Sequence record: NC_061447.1
Length of the DNA: 64,000 nucleotides
Direction: 5' to 3' (one strand)
Numbering within the stretch: the stretch's first letter is position 1; each line of letters begins with the position of its first letter. Of the stretch, positions 2,463 to 24,536 are shown one piece after another. The notes beneath the pieces are model-generated. The model was not told where the DNA came from. It ran no database searches and worked only from the letters and a program-made list of their open reading frames with translations. Made by a program: the position numbers and the translations under genes.

Positions 2463-3160
2463 AGAACTTCTCCTCTCTCGTCAGTGACGTAAGGAATGCC
2501 GTTGCCTTTGCCCAATCCATGTCGCAAAGCCCAAACGGTGTCGGCATTCTCCTGCACGAACACTAACCCTTTTGTTTCTGGCTCACTCGAACCTTCTTCA
2601 AGTGCTGTCACACGCGCTGTAAGAAGCTGTGCATCAGACTGAATGGTACGAATGGCGCTAAGGTTAGAGTTAACGCGCTGGTTCATGTTGTTGAACATGG
2701 TGAAGAACGAGTTGTTCATCGCCGTGCGAACGCCGTCCGTATAGGACTTAGGAATCAGTTCGTCGTTATCGAAGGTTGTTACACCTGTGCGCACAAGAAC
2801 TTTACCGGTAAGACGTCCACCACTTGCGCTGATAATCTGAGGAGCAGGCAAATCAGCCTCGTCCCAGACTTGAACAGTGGTCATCACCGTATTGTAGTCG
2901 GTCTCTTCCTGCCACGTATTCCTATAAGGAGCCGTAGCAGTTTTGGACTTACGACGCATCACTTTTTTATAGTTAGCGTTCGTACCGTCCGCGATAATCC
3001 AGAGACCGTTCAGTGGGAAAACGCGAGTGTAAGGTTCGGCGAATGCTAAGATGATTGTTACATCAGCACTTACCTTATACACAATATCGTTCGACGCTGA
3101 CAGACCTTGCTGTTGTGCAAGACTAATCAACGTGTCCACGTAGTTAGTCAACTGGCTCAT
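2336..3160 (-). CDS. Virion structural protein with central coiled-coil and C-terminal small beta domain
   Basis: C-terminal WALRHGLG..PYVTDERG..LWPETV...DNVLLLTFLEPVSGVA matches the W-x-I-x-HNLG...F..P.SG.A module common in phage tail and fibre proteins. Confidence 0.7.
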   Translation of the reverse strand: MSQLTNYVDTLISLAQQQGLSASNDIVYKVSADVTIILAFAEPYTRVFPLNGLWIIADGTNANYKKVMRRKSKTATAPYRNTWQEETDYNTVMTTVQVWDEADLPAPQIISASGGRLTGKVLVRTGVTTFDNDELIPKSYTDGVRTAMNNSFFTMFNNMNQRVNSNLSAIRTIQSDAQLLTARVTALEEGSSEPETKGLVFVQENADTVWALRHGLGKGNGIPYVTDERGEVLWPETVTPAEADPDNVLLLTFLEPVSGVAQLLYTPKAETNLQ

Positions 3161-3620
3161 CCGAGACTCCTAACGATTGAAGAATAATAGAACTTTTATC
3201 GGAGAAGGCCTTAGCGATCAGTTTAGCAGCAGCCTTATCGACAACGAGTGTGCTGATTTTCCCTTTGGTGTTGCACACAATAGTCTGCGGAGCAAACTGC
3301 GCACAAGCCAAAGCAAATAGCAGATGGTTGCCTAAGTCACCCGAGATACTAATCTCAACGCCAAGCTCAGGCACTAAGATGTTCTGGTTGATTTCGGCAA
3401 CGAACTGCGCCAGCACCACAGGGTCGATATCAGGAGGCGCTGTATCATATCCTTCGACAAGATCAATCTGACCAGTAGAAGGGTCAAACGCGAATGCAGA
3501 TGGGTCGCCAATGATTCGGCCGAATAGCTCGTCACTAACTTCAATGCAATCGTCGTCTGTCTTCTCGCGCACACGACCAATAATTGCATTCGTGGCGCGA
3601 TTGATTTTGATTATCGGCAT
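3144..3620 (-). CDS. Putative tail-fibre assembly/chaperone-like protein
   Basis: Follows a fibre gene, about 158 aa, AGGTGA RBS before ATG 3620. Function inferred from position and size only. Confidence 0.5.
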   Translation of the reverse strand: MPIIKINRATNAIIGRVREKTDDDCIEVSDELFGRIIGDPSAFAFDPSTGQIDLVEGYDTAPPDIDPVVLAQFVAEINQNILVPELGVEISISGDLGNHLLFALACAQFAPQTIVCNTKGKISTLVVDKAAAKLIAKAFSDKSSIILQSLGVSDEPVD

Positions 3621-3621
3621 A

Positions 3622-4443
3622 TTAATCACCTACCGCAGTATACCAGAAGTCCCAGCCAGCAGTATTGGTGCCAGTAGACTTGATGGTGAAGCCGCCTAAC
3701 AGGGCGTTCTCATTCATCGCGCTCGTACCGTCCAGATTGTAGAGCTGGTAGGTCCTTGCTTGGTTCAGAGCAGCGTTAACGAACGTGATGTTAATGCTGA
3801 TACAACGGTTGATGAATGCCGTGTTAAACACAACGTGGATGGTATCAGTAGTTGACGCGTTCACGACTCGACCCATGTTCTGAGTAAAGCCTGTGTTCAT
3901 GTCACGGTTACTACCAATCCATGCGTTCGGTATTACAGCGCCGGTGTTTGGGTTGAGCGCCTGAGACACACGATACTCGTCAATAGCAGCATCGCGTCCC
4001 GGGCTACCAGTAGGACCAGTTGCACCAGTAGGACCCACAGCGCCAGTGTTACCAGTAGCGCCGACAGGTCCTGTGTTACCAGTAGGTCCGTTACGGCCAC
4101 GAGGGCCACGAGGTCCCGGGCAACCATCTTCACCATCACGACCATCACGACCATCAGCACCAGGGAGACCGCGTAAGCCGTCTTTACCCTGTTTACCTTC
4201 GCGCCCTGATTTAAGCTGATCAGCAGTAGGCAGTCCGATAACACTAGACTGACTACCATCAGGCCAGATGACTGTTAGCGTACCTGTAGTTGTGTCAAAC
4301 TCAACACCCTGAGAGCCGGGAATCTTTGCAGCCTCTGTTGGGTCGATAAACGCAACAGCGGTCGCCGTCTTCTTACCCAACACTTTACCAACAGGCGAAG
4401 CACCGCCGTCGATAAGTGCAGGGTTAATCTTCGTAAGAGACAT
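3622..4443 (-). CDS. Collagen-like fibre protein with C-terminal gp53-like/lectin-type tip domain
   Basis: Uninterrupted Gly-X-Y run. The C-terminus HVVFNTAFINRCISINIT...GFTI...WYTAVGD is typical of phage fibre tip domains. Confidence 0.8.
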   Translation of the reverse strand: MSLTKINPALIDGGASPVGKVLGKKTATAVAFIDPTEAAKIPGSQGVEFDTTTGTLTVIWPDGSQSSVIGLPTADQLKSGREGKQGKDGLRGLPGADGRDGRDGEDGCPGPRGPRGRNGPTGNTGPVGATGNTGAVGPTGATGPTGSPGRDAAIDEYRVSQALNPNTGAVIPNAWIGSNRDMNTGFTQNMGRVVNASTTDTIHVVFNTAFINRCISINITFVNAALNQARTYQLYNLDGTSAMNENALLGGFTIKSTGTNTAGWDFWYTAVGD

Positions 4444-4454
4444 GGGCTAAACTC

Positions 4455-4658
4455 CTAACCAGTCAGTGTTGTCCAATCTGGTTGACCCGATTGTCCAGCC
4501 TCAGGATTTTTAACTTTGGTGTTGTTGATTGTCATGCGAACCCAACGCACACTTCCATCTGAATCCTGATACCGAACCTTCGTTCCACCATACGCTAAAT
4601 TAGCTACCCATCTGTCTCTGCTTGGGTCTTTGAATGCTAAACGTGCATAAGCTGGCAT
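4455..4658 (-). CDS. Small virion-associated protein (67 aa)
   Basis: GGAGAG RBS, fills the gap between neighbours, and resembles the N-terminal 55 aa of 7589..9613. Confidence 0.7.
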   Translation of the reverse strand: MPAYARLAFKDPSRDRWVANLAYGGTKVRYQDSDGSVRWVRMTINNTKVKNPEAGQSGQPDWTTLTG

Positions 4659-21036: not shown

Positions 21037-21326
21037 CAGCCAAATCTCACGTTAGAACTACCGTTAGATGCTGTGTCGCCACAACTGTTTGCGTCACCAG
21101 CACGTTGAGCTGGCTTGCCGTTGACGCGCACACTGGAGCTTGAAGTAGCTTTACCTGTATGAGGAGGCTTCTTTGGTTTCCAGTGTGGGCGATAGCTATC
21201 GCCTTGGCGAACACTCCCTTTCCCATTCACGAATACGTTAGACGAAGCCTGCGCAGGAACAACAGGAAAATAACCGCTGTGCCCTGTAGACAGATCTGTG
21301 CCTAAACGAATAGCAGGTTTACCCAT
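21036..21326 (-). CDS. PAAR-repeat spike tip protein (T4 gp5.4-like)
   Basis: KPAIRLGTD..TGH, VFVNGK...RQGD, VRVNGKPAQRAGD..SCG motifs, 96 aa. Confidence 0.92.
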   Translation of the reverse strand: MGKPAIRLGTDLSTGHSGYFPVVPAQASSNVFVNGKGSVRQGDSYRPHWKPKKPPHTGKATSSSSVRVNGKPAQRAGDANSCGDTASNGSSNVRFG

Positions 21327-21447
21327 TTCTATTTGCCTTCATTGGAGGGATTTTAGGAGAGCGCGGAGGGCTGATTTTCTGTCTCTCAAGTTTCTTCTTG
21401 CCGTCTTTTACGTCAAAGAATAACTTCCAATCAGTACATCGACACAT
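21319..21447 (-). CDS. Small basic ORF (42 aa, MCRCTDWKLFFDVKDGKKKLERQKISPPRSPKIPPMKANRNG)
   Basis: Below the track cut-off. AGAGGAG RBS 7 nt before the ATG, GCTAATTT motif upstream, stop overlaps the PAAR start. Confidence 0.65.
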   Translation of the reverse strand: MCRCTDWKLFFDVKDGKKKLERQKISPPRSPKIPPMKANRNG

Positions 21448-21470
21448 AACTATTCTCCTCTGTTAGGCAC

Positions 21471-21478
21471 AAATTAGC
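21471..21478 (-). promoter_or_regulatory. Candidate late-promoter motif GCTAATTT (copy 2)
   Basis: Exact intergenic copy between the terminator at 21493-21524 and ATG 21447. Confidence 0.55.
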
Positions 21479-21492
21479 TTGTTGCGCAGTAG

Positions 21493-21524
21493 AAACGAAA
21501 ACGGGCGACCCGAAGGCCACCCGT
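21493..21524 (-). terminator. Rho-independent terminator with cUUCGg loop
   Basis: ACGGGTGGCC-TTCG-GGTCGCCCGT followed by TTTCGTTTCT on the minus strand. Confidence 0.85.
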
Positions 21525-21556
21525 TTTCTAGTGCTTGGATTTGTGTCGTTACTCCC

Positions 21557-21715
21557 TTACGCCCGATGCAAGTGCCCTACGGCCGAAGCCGGTGAGCTGG
21601 AGTGGAAGACCGAGAGTGAAGCCGCACGCCACGGCAACAGTAAGTGACTCTCGGGCCTAGATAGATCGTGACCAAGCATCACGATTGCTATCAACGACAC
21701 TAAGAACAAAATCAT
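21557..21715 (-). CDS. Putative small membrane peptide (52 aa, MILFLVSLIAIVMLGHDLSRPESHLLLPWRAASLSVFHSSSPASAVGHLHRA)
   Basis: AGGAG 5 nt before the ATG, 14 N-terminal residues nearly all hydrophobic, ends just before the terminator. The coding region is itself highly base-paired, so translation is unproven. Confidence 0.45.
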   Translation of the reverse strand: MILFLVSLIAIVMLGHDLSRPESHLLLPWRAASLSVFHSSSPASAVGHLHRA

Positions 21716-21773
21716 GTTTGCTCCTGTGTCTCCCTATAAGTAAAACATTTGCAAATGTCGATCAAGTTACTTC

Positions 21774-22184
21774 GAATCGCCCTTCGCCCAACATCACTAG
21801 AGTTTCGATTCTTTTTCTCTCTTTACCGCCTGGGTTGCGGCGAGCCGCGCACAAGAACAACGCTTCAACCATACGTGGGCAAGGAGGCACGTACCGTATT
21901 CACATCGCTCAAGCGAAGGAGGTCTCCCATCGGTGATCTGCGGTGGTTAATACACTCTTTAACAATCGCTCTTGTTGTGCATTAGATCGTGGTAGGAACG
22001 CGATTGACCGCTAACAAGTCCTATACGATATTTCACTACCCGGAAAAGTGGGCAAGCTATGGCAGCACGTCAACGACAGCAGGCGCGGACACACTCCATT
22101 GAACATTGTTAAGGGCAATGCTCAACAGGCTGTGAACAGCTTTGACCAAACGTAGAGTCGCTCGTCGCCCAACATCACTTGAGT
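21774..22184. repeat. 30-nt direct repeat (26/30 identical) at 21774-21803 and 22155-22184
   Basis: GAATCGCCCTTCGCCCAACATCACTAGAGT versus GAGTCGCTCGTCGCCCAACATCACTTGAGT. Each copy is enclosed by its own, different stem. Confidence 0.85.
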
Positions 22185-22727
22185 ATCTCGTCTACGTTCT
22201 TTTACTCCCTGAATACCGTACAAGGAAGACGGCGCTCATGAGGGTCTGCGGATGTTTATCACTCTCAGACTCTTGAGCCACTATCTGGAAGCTAACACGT
22301 TGAGTCGTCCGCTGGATGACGTGTTAACTCTCCTCTCCCCGTCGTGCGAGGGCCAGAGTGGTAGCTGATGGATTGTCATGAAGTCCTGACCTAGGTCATC
22401 GCTTCCCAATGCGCACAAAGTGAGAGGATATGCGCATCAGGCAGCGGAGGCTGCGGTATTGCTATCCCTATTAGATGGTTCACAGCGTTGAGAATACGCT
22501 CCAACCATCTACGCGCCTAAGAGGCAGTTGCCGTGCCATGTCTGTCAACGATGAAATCAGCTGGGCCTTTTGAGCGTCAGCAGCAGAGCAACCGTCTATC
22601 GCGTGGGTGCCGGGGTTGTCCTCACGATTACAGAGCTTACACTCAAACCGGCTGGAGGCCTATGTGTTGGCAAGAACAACTCACAGGTTTATGGCTCCCG
22701 GAGAGCGCCCGCTAAGTACACTCTCCG

Positions 22728-22756
22728 ATGATACAACTTGATATTACTATCTGCAA
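22728..22756 (-). promoter_or_regulatory. Sigma70-type promoter TTGCAG-N17-TATCAT with AT-rich UP element
   Basis: -35 at 22751-22756, -10 at 22728-22733, exact 17-nt spacer, upstream AAATCTGTAAATAAAAA. Points into the ORF-less region, TSS about 22721. Confidence 0.75.
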
Positions 22757-22772
22757 TTTTTATTTACAGATT

Positions 22773-24536
22773 TTAGAACGCTTTACGTTCGATATTCGAA
22801 TATAAAGTTTCATACGGCTCAGAGTACAACTCAGGTCCACGCTGTGCGCGAATCGTCACGTAGCCCGTATGACGGTTGAATGCAATAATCTCGACCGTAG
22901 GCTGTTTAGGCTTGATGGTCGCATAGATAGGAGCATTCATTGTTGGTTCGTCTGTCTGAATCTTATTTACAGATTGCAGAGCAGCGCCCGAGATGTTCGG
23001 CAGATTAAAACGCAGTTCAGCGCGTTTCTGGCCAAACGCAGTACGCAGCATACCGGCTTCCAGTGGCACACCATTCTGCTTGAGGTACGCAGCGATGCGA
23101 CGGCCGATGCCTGTGAGCTGGTCACGGGTGCGTGGGTCGAATGTACCTTCGAAGCTGATTGCTTCTGATGGTTGACGTACAGACAGGTGCAGACCAGTGT
23201 TGAAGTAGCCTTCGGTCAGCAGACGCAGAACCTCTTTGACGACTTCTTTAGTGTTAGGCTTGATAGCAGCGATACGCAGTTCAGGCACGTCCACTTTCAC
23301 AGGGTCACGCAGTTCGGTCTGGTTGTCCATGTAACCGAGAGATACGTGCTTTGCGTTGGTGTACGTGTGTTGCAGAACACCAGTAGCGCGAATCAGCACC
23401 GAGCCACCTTTAGATTGATCGTAGAGTTCATCGCTGGTGGTTGTGCTGAACAGGTAATAGTCGGTAGGAACAGCCATGCGATTAACAGCTTCAATCGCTT
23501 TGGTCTGCGCCTCTTTCACAGTAGCACCAAACACAATGCGACTGCGGTTAGGCTGGGCAGCAGATACAGGGAAGAACGCACCGTACACAACGCTTACGTT
23601 TTTCTTAATCGGCTTCTCAGACTGTACTTTCTTACCGCCAGGCAGAGAAGGCAGCTTAACGCCCACCAGCTTGCCTTTGACGATATGCTTGTTCTCTTTA
23701 ACAGGCTTGAGGCCGTCAATGAGTTTCGCCAGATCAGCACCGCTAAGAATCTTCTCCAGCGGAACAGCAAGGTTCTGCGGCAGATAGTGCTTCTTACGGA
23801 ACATGTAGATAACGGTGTCTTTCTTGATCTGCATTGGCGTAGCCATGTTGCGACCAATAACACCGACAGGCTGGAACGTGTTTGCTTTATCGTCAGCGAC
23901 TGCACCGAACTGCTTGGTGAACTCAGTCTGGCCGATGATGTTAGCTGCACGTAAGTGACCACGAACGATAAACACGATCTTCGGTTCATCTTTCATGCGC
24001 AACTCGTAACGGTCACGGTTCAGATAAACCATGCTGAACTTGTCGCCTTTCTCCAGCTCAAGATCGTACTCGTCGTTAGCGTCGTCGATAACAACTTTCT
24101 TACCCTGATAGGTAGCGTACACACGAGGGCCAGCAGATTCGGAAGCAATCTCCATGGCCTTACATGTGTTGGACATAGAGGCAGCGAAGTCCATGACAGC
24201 AGGCATCAGGTCGAACGAAGATGCCACTGCATACGGCTCACGCTTCTTACCAAGCTGTACGTGGACAGCGCTACTGCTGGACATGAACACAGTGTTACCA
24301 GTGTCTTCATGTGTGCCAGCGAAGTGCATACCACTGATACGTTCGATGATGTTTGCGTTAAGCGACTGGAAGTTTACTTCGCTTCCTGCGGTGAAGTCAT
24401 AAATCTCACCGTTGCGCCACGCATATGCCACGTTGTTGGAGCTAAGACCTACAAAAGCATCACCCAACTGACGCACGGTCAATGGCATGATGCTCAGGTC
24501 ACGAATAATCGAGGACTGCTTTTGAATGAGGTTCAT
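22773..24536 (-). CDS. Hypothetical protein (587 aa) carrying the repeated head-region domain
   Basis: Long ORF with RBS. Segment VYATYQGKKVVI...LEKGDKFSM...RYEL..KDEPKIVFIV is similar to N-termini of 36990..37664, 45559..46689 and 52806..54677. Confidence 0.8.
   Translation of the reverse strand: MNLIQKQSSIIRDLSIMPLTVRQLGDAFVGLSSNNVAYAWRNGEIYDFTAGSEVNFQSLNANIIERISGMHFAGTHEDTGNTVFMSSSSAVHVQLGKKREPYAVASSFDLMPAVMDFAASMSNTCKAMEIASESAGPRVYATYQGKKVVIDDANDEYDLELEKGDKFSMVYLNRDRYELRMKDEPKIVFIVRGHLRAANIIGQTEFTKQFGAVADDKANTFQPVGVIGRNMATPMQIKKDTVIYMFRKKHYLPQNLAVPLEKILSGADLAKLIDGLKPVKENKHIVKGKLVGVKLPSLPGGKKVQSEKPIKKNVSVVYGAFFPVSAAQPNRSRIVFGATVKEAQTKAIEAVNRMAVPTDYYLFSTTTSDELYDQSKGGSVLIRATGVLQHTYTNAKHVSLGYMDNQTELRDPVKVDVPELRIAAIKPNTKEVVKEVLRLLTEGYFNTGLHLSVRQPSEAISFEGTFDPRTRDQLTGIGRRIAAYLKQNGVPLEAGMLRTAFGQKRAELRFNLPNISGAALQSVNKIQTDEPTMNAPIYATIKPKQPTVEIIAFNRHTGYVTIRAQRGPELYSEPYETLYSNIERKAF

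Follow-up and report, generated by a model that had tools for sequence, protein, structure and literature searches.

The DNA analyzed here, to which we refer as the window, is a stretch of 64,000 nucleotides from the genome of Erwinia phage pEa_SNUABM_33 (Alexandravirus; NC_061447, 263,237 bp), and all positions are counted from its first letter unless stated otherwise. Every gene in the window lies on the minus strand. Between PAAR/baseplate genes on one side and a gene for a 587 amino acid hypothetical protein on the other there is a 1.33-kb gap without long open reading frames (ORFs) at positions 21448-22772, and this gap holds both of the hairpins that are the subject of this analysis. The “hypothetical proteins” that are annotated inside the gap vary in place and strand from record to record. 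The 587 amino acid protein (22773-24536, minus strand) is assigned to phrog_32352; a KMPT-N domain (residues 139-201) is the only domain found in it, it has no sequence relative in the PDB, and its AlphaFold model is poor (pLDDT 51). A search found no tRNA or tmRNA. On the baseplate side, the terminator described below and the PAAR gene are separated by a 42 amino acid ORF (21319-21447, minus strand), which only SNUABM_33, AD1 and SNUABM_3 carry and which is missing in the other relatives.

An earlier note, made from the letters of this stretch, had reported two 30-nt copies of a stem-loop, identical at 26 of 30 positions and 381 nt apart. This repeat is borne out. The pair extends over 38 nt (21769-21806 and 22150-22187; 82% identity at a spacing of 381 nt), 26/30 is the best match between any 30-mers within the gap, and none of 200 dinucleotide-preserving shuffles of the gap reaches it, the best shuffle giving 22. 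The RNA-sense letters, the A-rich stretch before each copy and the differing closing stems that the note had described all agree with the sequence as well. The 15-nt loop, AGUGAUGUUGGGCGA, has exact matches at only two sites in the 263,237-bp genome, and its reversed control has none. A search of the phage genome for the loop or its complement returned, beyond the two copies, only one match on the other strand with two mismatches (genome position 156826), which we take as chance.

Each copy can be described as two stems separated by a bulge. In copy A (22148-22199, minus strand), the outer stem pairs 22199-22191 with 22156-22148, plus a CG/CG pair step; a 5' bulge AGAUA follows, then an inner stem (22183-22181 with 22163-22161) and the 15-nt loop at 22179-22165. 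In copy B (21774-21811, minus strand), the outer stem pairs 21811-21806 with 21779-21774, the 5' bulge is AAA (21805-21803), and the inner stem (21802-21799 with 21783-21780) carries the 15-nt loop at 21798-21784.

Our hairpin comparison covers 32 instances from 17 distinct phage sequences, namely 13 Alexandravirus phages, the Sasquatchvirus Y3, two Snuvirus phages and the metagenomic phage M13825, whose sequence is a join of two contigs (overlap 105 nt with 2 mismatches). Lack of conservation in related phages, which the earlier note had named as an outcome against its own reading, is not what we see; both hairpins are conserved among these relatives. The idea of a constant loop set on exchanged stems also stands, the stems covarying throughout these instances and the loop being near-invariant. 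The 15-nt loop is in register in 30/32 instances. In the closing stem of copy A, 87.5% of the cells are paired, compared with 71.5% in shuffles, and 24 changes are double-sided, compared with 8.6 in shuffles (0/500 shuffles as high). The closing stem of copy B gives 94.7% paired cells versus 72.0% and 33 double-sided changes versus 11.1 (again 0/500 shuffles). When the partner strand is slid by 1-3 columns, pairing falls to 26-46% in both copies.

The double-sided changes are found in both stems of the hairpins. They occur in 5 of the 9 outer pairs of copy A, whose inner stem changes from CUC/GAG to CCC/GGG in Snuvirus, and in copy B they occur in 5 of the 6 outer pairs and 3 of the 4 inner pairs. 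Both copies have the same build: a freely varying outer stem, an A-rich 5' bulge of 3-5 nt (AGAUA, AUA, AAA), a covarying inner stem of 3-4 bp (CUC/GAG, CCC/GGG, CCAU/AUGG, CCUA/UAGG) and then a closing position that is A.C, U-A or A-U. For copy A, RNAfold and RNAalifold propose an alternative local fold, CUCAA/UUGGG. We reject this fold because the change of U9 to C breaks its pairing and because the copy B variants CCAU/AUGG and CCUA/UAGG back the inner stem.

Variation within the loop follows simple rules. Over the 30 in-register instances, positions 1-5, 10, 11, 13 and 15 are invariant, positions 6/9 occur only as U/U, A/C or A/U and never as U/C, position 12 is A in three instances, and position 14 is A in two. 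Within a genome, the loop states of copies A and B are uncorrelated. Since the two copies are uncorrelated and yet show the same allowed states, the same constraint acts on both and gene conversion is not the cause, and two loops that evolve separately under one constraint argue for one kind of partner.

The hairpins are, on comparative evidence from sequence, conserved building blocks of a previously undescribed structured RNA gene of approximately 1.25 kb in giant phages of Erwinia and Dickeya. Conservation extends over the full length of the gap in 34 records (73-100% identity), while in Y3 and Snuvirus it is confined to blocks. Many helices with 3-9 double-sided compensatory pairs emerge from a de novo scan and from RNAalifold. 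The consensus folding energy is -325.6 kcal/mol in the minus sense versus -212.9 kcal/mol in the plus sense, and the minus-sense helices contain 686 G.U cells versus 30 A.C cells, a count in which the predictor itself favours G.U. The region thus has the features of large ornate noncoding RNAs: no conserved long ORFs, conservation across genera, compensatory helices and predicted transcription signals. In Rfam, the 64-kb window gives no match at the gathering score, and a search of positions 21200-22900 at E ≤ 10 gives only two chance-level matches, none of them relevant. Our search of the literature found no paper describing this RNA.

The boundaries and the strand of the predicted unit are established by signals in the sequence. 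At its 5' edge is a promoter-like motif (22761-22772, minus strand), the over-represented 10-mer AATCTGTAAA in its extended form AATCTGTAAA(TA). The 10-mer has 19 copies in the genome versus one for the reversed control. Two of these sites are 22761-22772 and 22966-22975 (both minus strand), with 17 more elsewhere in the genome, and most copies are in gene orientation, 30-60 nt upstream of a Shine-Dalgarno sequence and ATG. None of the relatives shows any change in the motif, which probably represents the promoter consensus for a sigma factor that this phage group encodes itself. The unit is closed by an intrinsic terminator (21497-21528, minus strand), a 14-bp GC-rich stem followed by a T-run, which is kept in all relatives with compensatory changes. 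Transcription of the unit is predicted from these promoter and terminator signals. The public runs containing the sequence include six RNA libraries, and in four metatranscriptome runs the contigs fall on the neighboring genes just as they do on the RNA.

A small ORF of 52 amino acids (21557-21715, minus strand) takes up only the last 160 nt or so of the RNA, at its 3' end. Its N-terminus is hydrophobic, and its ATG is preceded by AGGAG at a distance of 5-6 nt. The ORF is open in relatives, where it has 47-57 amino acids, as judged by translation in 14/17 phages and by alignment, where the context of the start codon is conserved, in S35, Alexandra and S2 (for S35 and S2 also from annotated 47 amino acid ORFs), and its indels are multiples of three. 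The small ORF overlaps covarying hairpins, so that this stretch is both coding and structured.

A second repeated element is found about 70-130 nt before each hairpin. In module A, this upstream element (AGAGUG..AAC..CCGCAGA; 22245-22265, minus strand) aligns with the element of module B (21937-21958, minus strand). The two elements agree at about 22/24 positions and end in CCGCAGA. Aligned alone, they reach a local alignment score of 39, shuffles giving a mean of 22.3 (sd 4.3) and a maximum of 39.5. The module A element is kept in all relatives, and an A-rich joiner stands directly before both hairpins. With these shared parts, each hairpin caps the equivalent arm of an internally duplicated module.

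Adjacent to copy A is another hairpin (22100-22124, minus strand), with 9 bp, of which 5 pairs show double-sided changes, and the loop CCCUUAA. This loop includes the 4-nt palindrome UUAA and is letter-identical in JA13, JA29 and SNUABM_5 while the stem changes. It is, speculatively, a candidate loop-loop partner of the hairpin loop. In M13825, the most distant full-length relative, copy A has become a 5-bp hairpin with a GAAA tetraloop and a UUCG hairpin stands in place of the CCCUUAA hairpin, but no letter of copy B has changed. A long-range helix between the 5' end (22743-22739) and 22261-22257 was also considered; it has one compensatory case (M13825) and is absent in Y3 and Snuvirus, and we do not claim it.

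More distant homologues of the RNA are found behind homologues of the 587 amino acid gene. In each of the seven genera checked, this gene immediately precedes the RNA on its upstream side. In Yoloswag, SNUABM_5, JA13 and JA29, whose proteins are 41-51% identical to the 587 amino acid protein, the gene is followed by a AATCTGTAAA-type promoter motif and 0.6-1.0 kb without ORFs. The shorter or rearranged RNA occupies positions 2464-4469 of locus L105 (JA29), 4374-5084 of L106 (Yoloswag), 4377-5000 of L107 (SNUABM_5) and 4377-5112 of L108 (JA13). These shorter versions (0.6-1.0 kb), from Salmondvirus, Yoloswagvirus and Rivsvirus, have one or two hairpin modules with a hexaloop, and nhmmer with the Alexandravirus profile detects only their terminator. 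The distant hairpins consist of a covarying outer stem, an AGA bulge, an inner stem and a plain 6-nt G-rich loop (e.g., AGUGGG). Such a 6-nt loop, without the second GA of the 15-nt loop, is found in copy A of Y3, in Yoloswag (two copies), SNUABM_5, JA13 and JA29 (two copies). In Y3, the hexaloop type is located at the copy A position of a full-length alignable RNA. With its full length retained in at least three genera, and a shorter recognizable form in four more, the RNA is under strong selection.

The earlier note had read the core of the hairpins as a kink-turn (k-turn) or K-loop. The letters of the twin hairpins are close to those of box C and box D, and their resemblance to box C'/D' also counts in favor of K-loops. 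The letter pattern stem-AGU-GA...GA-stem, in which a canonical stem is followed by a 3-nt bulge, by a GA on the same strand as the bulge and by a second GA just ahead of the returning strand, is found in 30/32 instances as a pattern of sequence. Its strands have the polarity that the definition of a k-turn requires (Huang and Lilley 2016, PMC5061560). Loop positions 4/15 are G/A in all 30 of these instances (G4 and A15 being invariant), and positions 5/14 are A/G in 28 and A/A in two. The A at position 2n is a known non-standard, isosteric variant of k-turns (PMC5061560).

What stands of this reading, however, is the letter pattern. Copy B of Y3 has a C at 1n, a change that abolishes k-turn function in the SAM-I riboswitch (PMC5061560), and the hairpin is nevertheless kept there, with eight continuous Watson-Crick/G.U pairs under a hexaloop and with GUGA and the G-run retained. 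The second GA is missing from Y3 copy A and the distant homologues of the hexaloop type, and the 1n adenine and G.A core are therefore not kept family-wide. At -1b/-1n, where standard examples carry C-G (PMC5061560), we find A.C in 17 of the 30 instances, U-A in 9 and A-U in 4. The 3b.3n position is U.C in 20 and A.C in 10, whereas folding in Mg2+ only needs 3n = G or 3b = C (PMC5061560), and it is thus not of the self-folding type. Unlike a typical K-loop complex, the motif here is a terminal loop of a phage RNA in a host without L7Ae; a six-frame search of the phage for the L7Ae family (PF01248) gave no match at E ≤ 1, while its control matched 8/14 genomes. Bacterial L7Ae homologues are reported, as relayed through reference 43 in PMC5061560, not to bind K-loops. 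The K-loop reading fits the letters but, in the alignments, is not what the relatives conserve. We consider it rather unlikely that these are genuine K-loops, in which the AGU bulge and tandem sheared G.A/A.G pairs would form a kinked platform that is bound by protein or stabilized by a tertiary contact. The case carries a caution, since a loop that matches the K-loop consensus letter for letter is by comparative data most likely something else.

The loop most likely folds as an irregular, purine-rich extension of the stem under a conserved G-rich hexaloop. In this fold, A1 would be bulged, G2.A15, U3.G14, G4-C13 and A5.G12 would form a short irregular helix, and the hexaloop WGUYGG (positions 6-11) would cap it and correspond to the AGUGGG-type hexaloops of the distant relatives. 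This register accommodates all homologues. In Y3 copy B, G.A is replaced by G-C and A.G by A-U, with U.G and G-C kept, and a U-A pair results where G14 has changed to A, as it has independently in two lineages. The variation among the 30 in-register loops fits three registers alike: the irregular helix, the K-loop, and G2-C13 with U3.G12.

Repeated sites for one partner, either protein or RNA, are the best-supported function of the twin hairpins in our reading of the alignments. The sequences show that the repeat exists and is conserved, and they show its stems, its strand, the signal-based boundaries of the unit and the wider family; the fold of the loop, the docking function and the partner are inferred. 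The two copies would be paralogous hairpin modules, each with a covarying outer stem, a 3-5 nt A-rich 5' bulge, a 3-4 bp inner stem and a G-rich loop, and they would hold equivalent positions in two duplicated sub-domains of the approximately 1.25-kb RNA. Alexandravirus-type jumbo phages would transcribe this RNA on the minus strand as a separate unit, with a phage promoter and a terminator of its own. Its loop would stay constant because it is the recognition surface that the same kind of partner reads at both sites. The partner would most likely be RNA, in a tertiary or quaternary loop-receptor or loop-loop contact that organizes the large RNA, with a protein as the main rival. We lean toward an RNA contact because M13825 replaces copy A and the adjacent CCCUUAA hairpin together and leaves copy B unchanged. 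This co-replacement may represent the joint loss of two interacting loops, although it is a single event and a GGG:CCC contact has only 3 bp. A complementarity scan of the RNA for loop partners gave only short, G.U-rich or already-paired candidates. Those at 22442-22436, 21677-21671 and 21601-21596 are invariant, G.U-rich or inside covarying helices, and we find them unconvincing. Taken as a whole, paralogous docking hairpins in a large phage RNA, with an RNA partner favored, are the best explanation that we can offer, and we give it about an even chance of being correct.

If the partner were a protein, the hairpins would be operators, in which a bulged-purine stem and a G-rich hexaloop attract a phage or host protein in two copies, such as a virion or assembly protein or the 587 amino acid protein, whose gene is always next to the RNA. 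The architecture from bulge to loop is kept across seven genera while the stems covary, the copy number of the module ranges from 1 to 2 in distant relatives, and the constant position of the KMPT-N gene directly upstream of the RNA would suit such a role. That adjacency may, however, reflect genome-wide synteny only, and the 587 amino acid protein, with its poor model and lack of PDB relatives, has no identified RNA-binding domain. The build, hexaloop included, resembles that of the PP7 operator. The MS2 and PP7 operators share with our hairpins a short stem and a 5' purine bulge a few pairs below a small conserved loop, and in coat-protein operators the bulge is required for binding, in PP7 a bulged adenine (review PMC12360210). 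The hairpins here depart from these operators in their bulge, which has 3-5 nt or, in some relatives, gives way to an A.C mismatch, and in the letters of the loop; they are not known to have a cognate protein. The GNRA tetraloop that replaces copy A in M13825 also suits an RNA contact better, and protein-binding operators appear doubtful to us.

Two further explanations concern the RNA as a whole or the DNA itself. The small ORF, with its Shine-Dalgarno sequence, begins about 50 nt downstream of copy B in the same promoter-terminator unit, and the RNA might serve this ORF (a membrane peptide) as a giant structured leader, regulating its translation or stability, with the loops acting in a switch and not in architecture. 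We think this very improbable: about 1 kb of conserved covarying structure far exceeds the need of known leaders of small toxic peptides, copy A is about 450 nt upstream of the ORF, and the gene that comes after the homologous RNA of JA29 and JA13 is a different one, of 103 amino acids. The repeats might also act at the DNA level, as protein-binding inverted repeats, an origin or a packaging signal, since inverted repeats exist on both strands by definition and transcription of the unit rests on sequence signals. The strong strand asymmetry, in folding energy and in the G.U count that the predictor favours, speaks against a DNA element, as does the polarity that the promoter motif and the terminator share with the structure, and we regard it as extremely unlikely.

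The paralogous docking hairpins can be compared with known RNAs. The earlier note had likened them to the repeated loops of sponge RNAs such as CsrB. CsrB and RsmZ do repeat hairpin loops with the same letters in one RNA, but the analogy fails here. There are only two copies in the genome, 381 nt apart, they belong to a large RNA with extensive structure and not to a row of simple hairpins, and most loops lack a GGA core, which is present only where G12 has become A (3/30 loops). GOLLD and ROOL are, like the RNA described here, encoded by phages, over 0.6 kb long and without long ORFs, and they have many covarying helices and conserved terminal loops. In both, kissing loops and A-minor contacts build tertiary and quaternary structure, as seen by cryo-EM (PMC12286853). 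The present RNA differs from them in being carried by Enterobacterales jumbo phages, in lying in a baseplate module and not near tRNAs, and in its 3' small ORF; the GOLLD and ROOL covariance models gave no match in the RNA region even at E ≤ 10.

It is tempting to speculate, although we put the probability low, that the twin loops act as repeated docking modules in an ornate RNA of jumbo phages that represents a new class, approximately 1.25 kb long, with a late-type promoter and a terminator of its own and in the middle of baseplate genes, and that would serve in GOLLD/ROOL-like assembly or as a protein scaffold. If true, the conserved loops would assemble the RNA into a defined tertiary or multimeric architecture, as in GOLLD and ROOL. 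Alternatively, the RNA would scaffold phage proteins, with the number of contacts adjusted by duplication or loss of modules. Phages are known to carry very few large structured RNAs, and as far as our literature searches reach, none is known in Enterobacterales jumbo phages or in a structural-gene module. The twin hairpins are of interest mainly as part of a new large phage RNA. They are the most conspicuous conserved surface of this RNA and offer a handle for mutagenesis, pull-downs and structure work.

Searches of metagenomic and bacterial sequences add a few observations on distribution. The 17-mer loop pattern gives 54 loci in IMG/VR, where the RNA is carried by relatives only, and a metagenome search with the core pattern added one partial homologue (L090). 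Eight matches to the core pattern in bacterial genomes, mostly those of GC-rich Actinomycetes, do not match the RNA profile and are taken as chance. In metatranscriptomes of unrelated samples, contigs match the RNA core (21764-22044 and 22196-22424) with 100% identity, while on the flanking genes those runs have contigs that differ by some 10-20%. Either the RNA core is more conserved than its neighbors or several strains are mixed in the samples.
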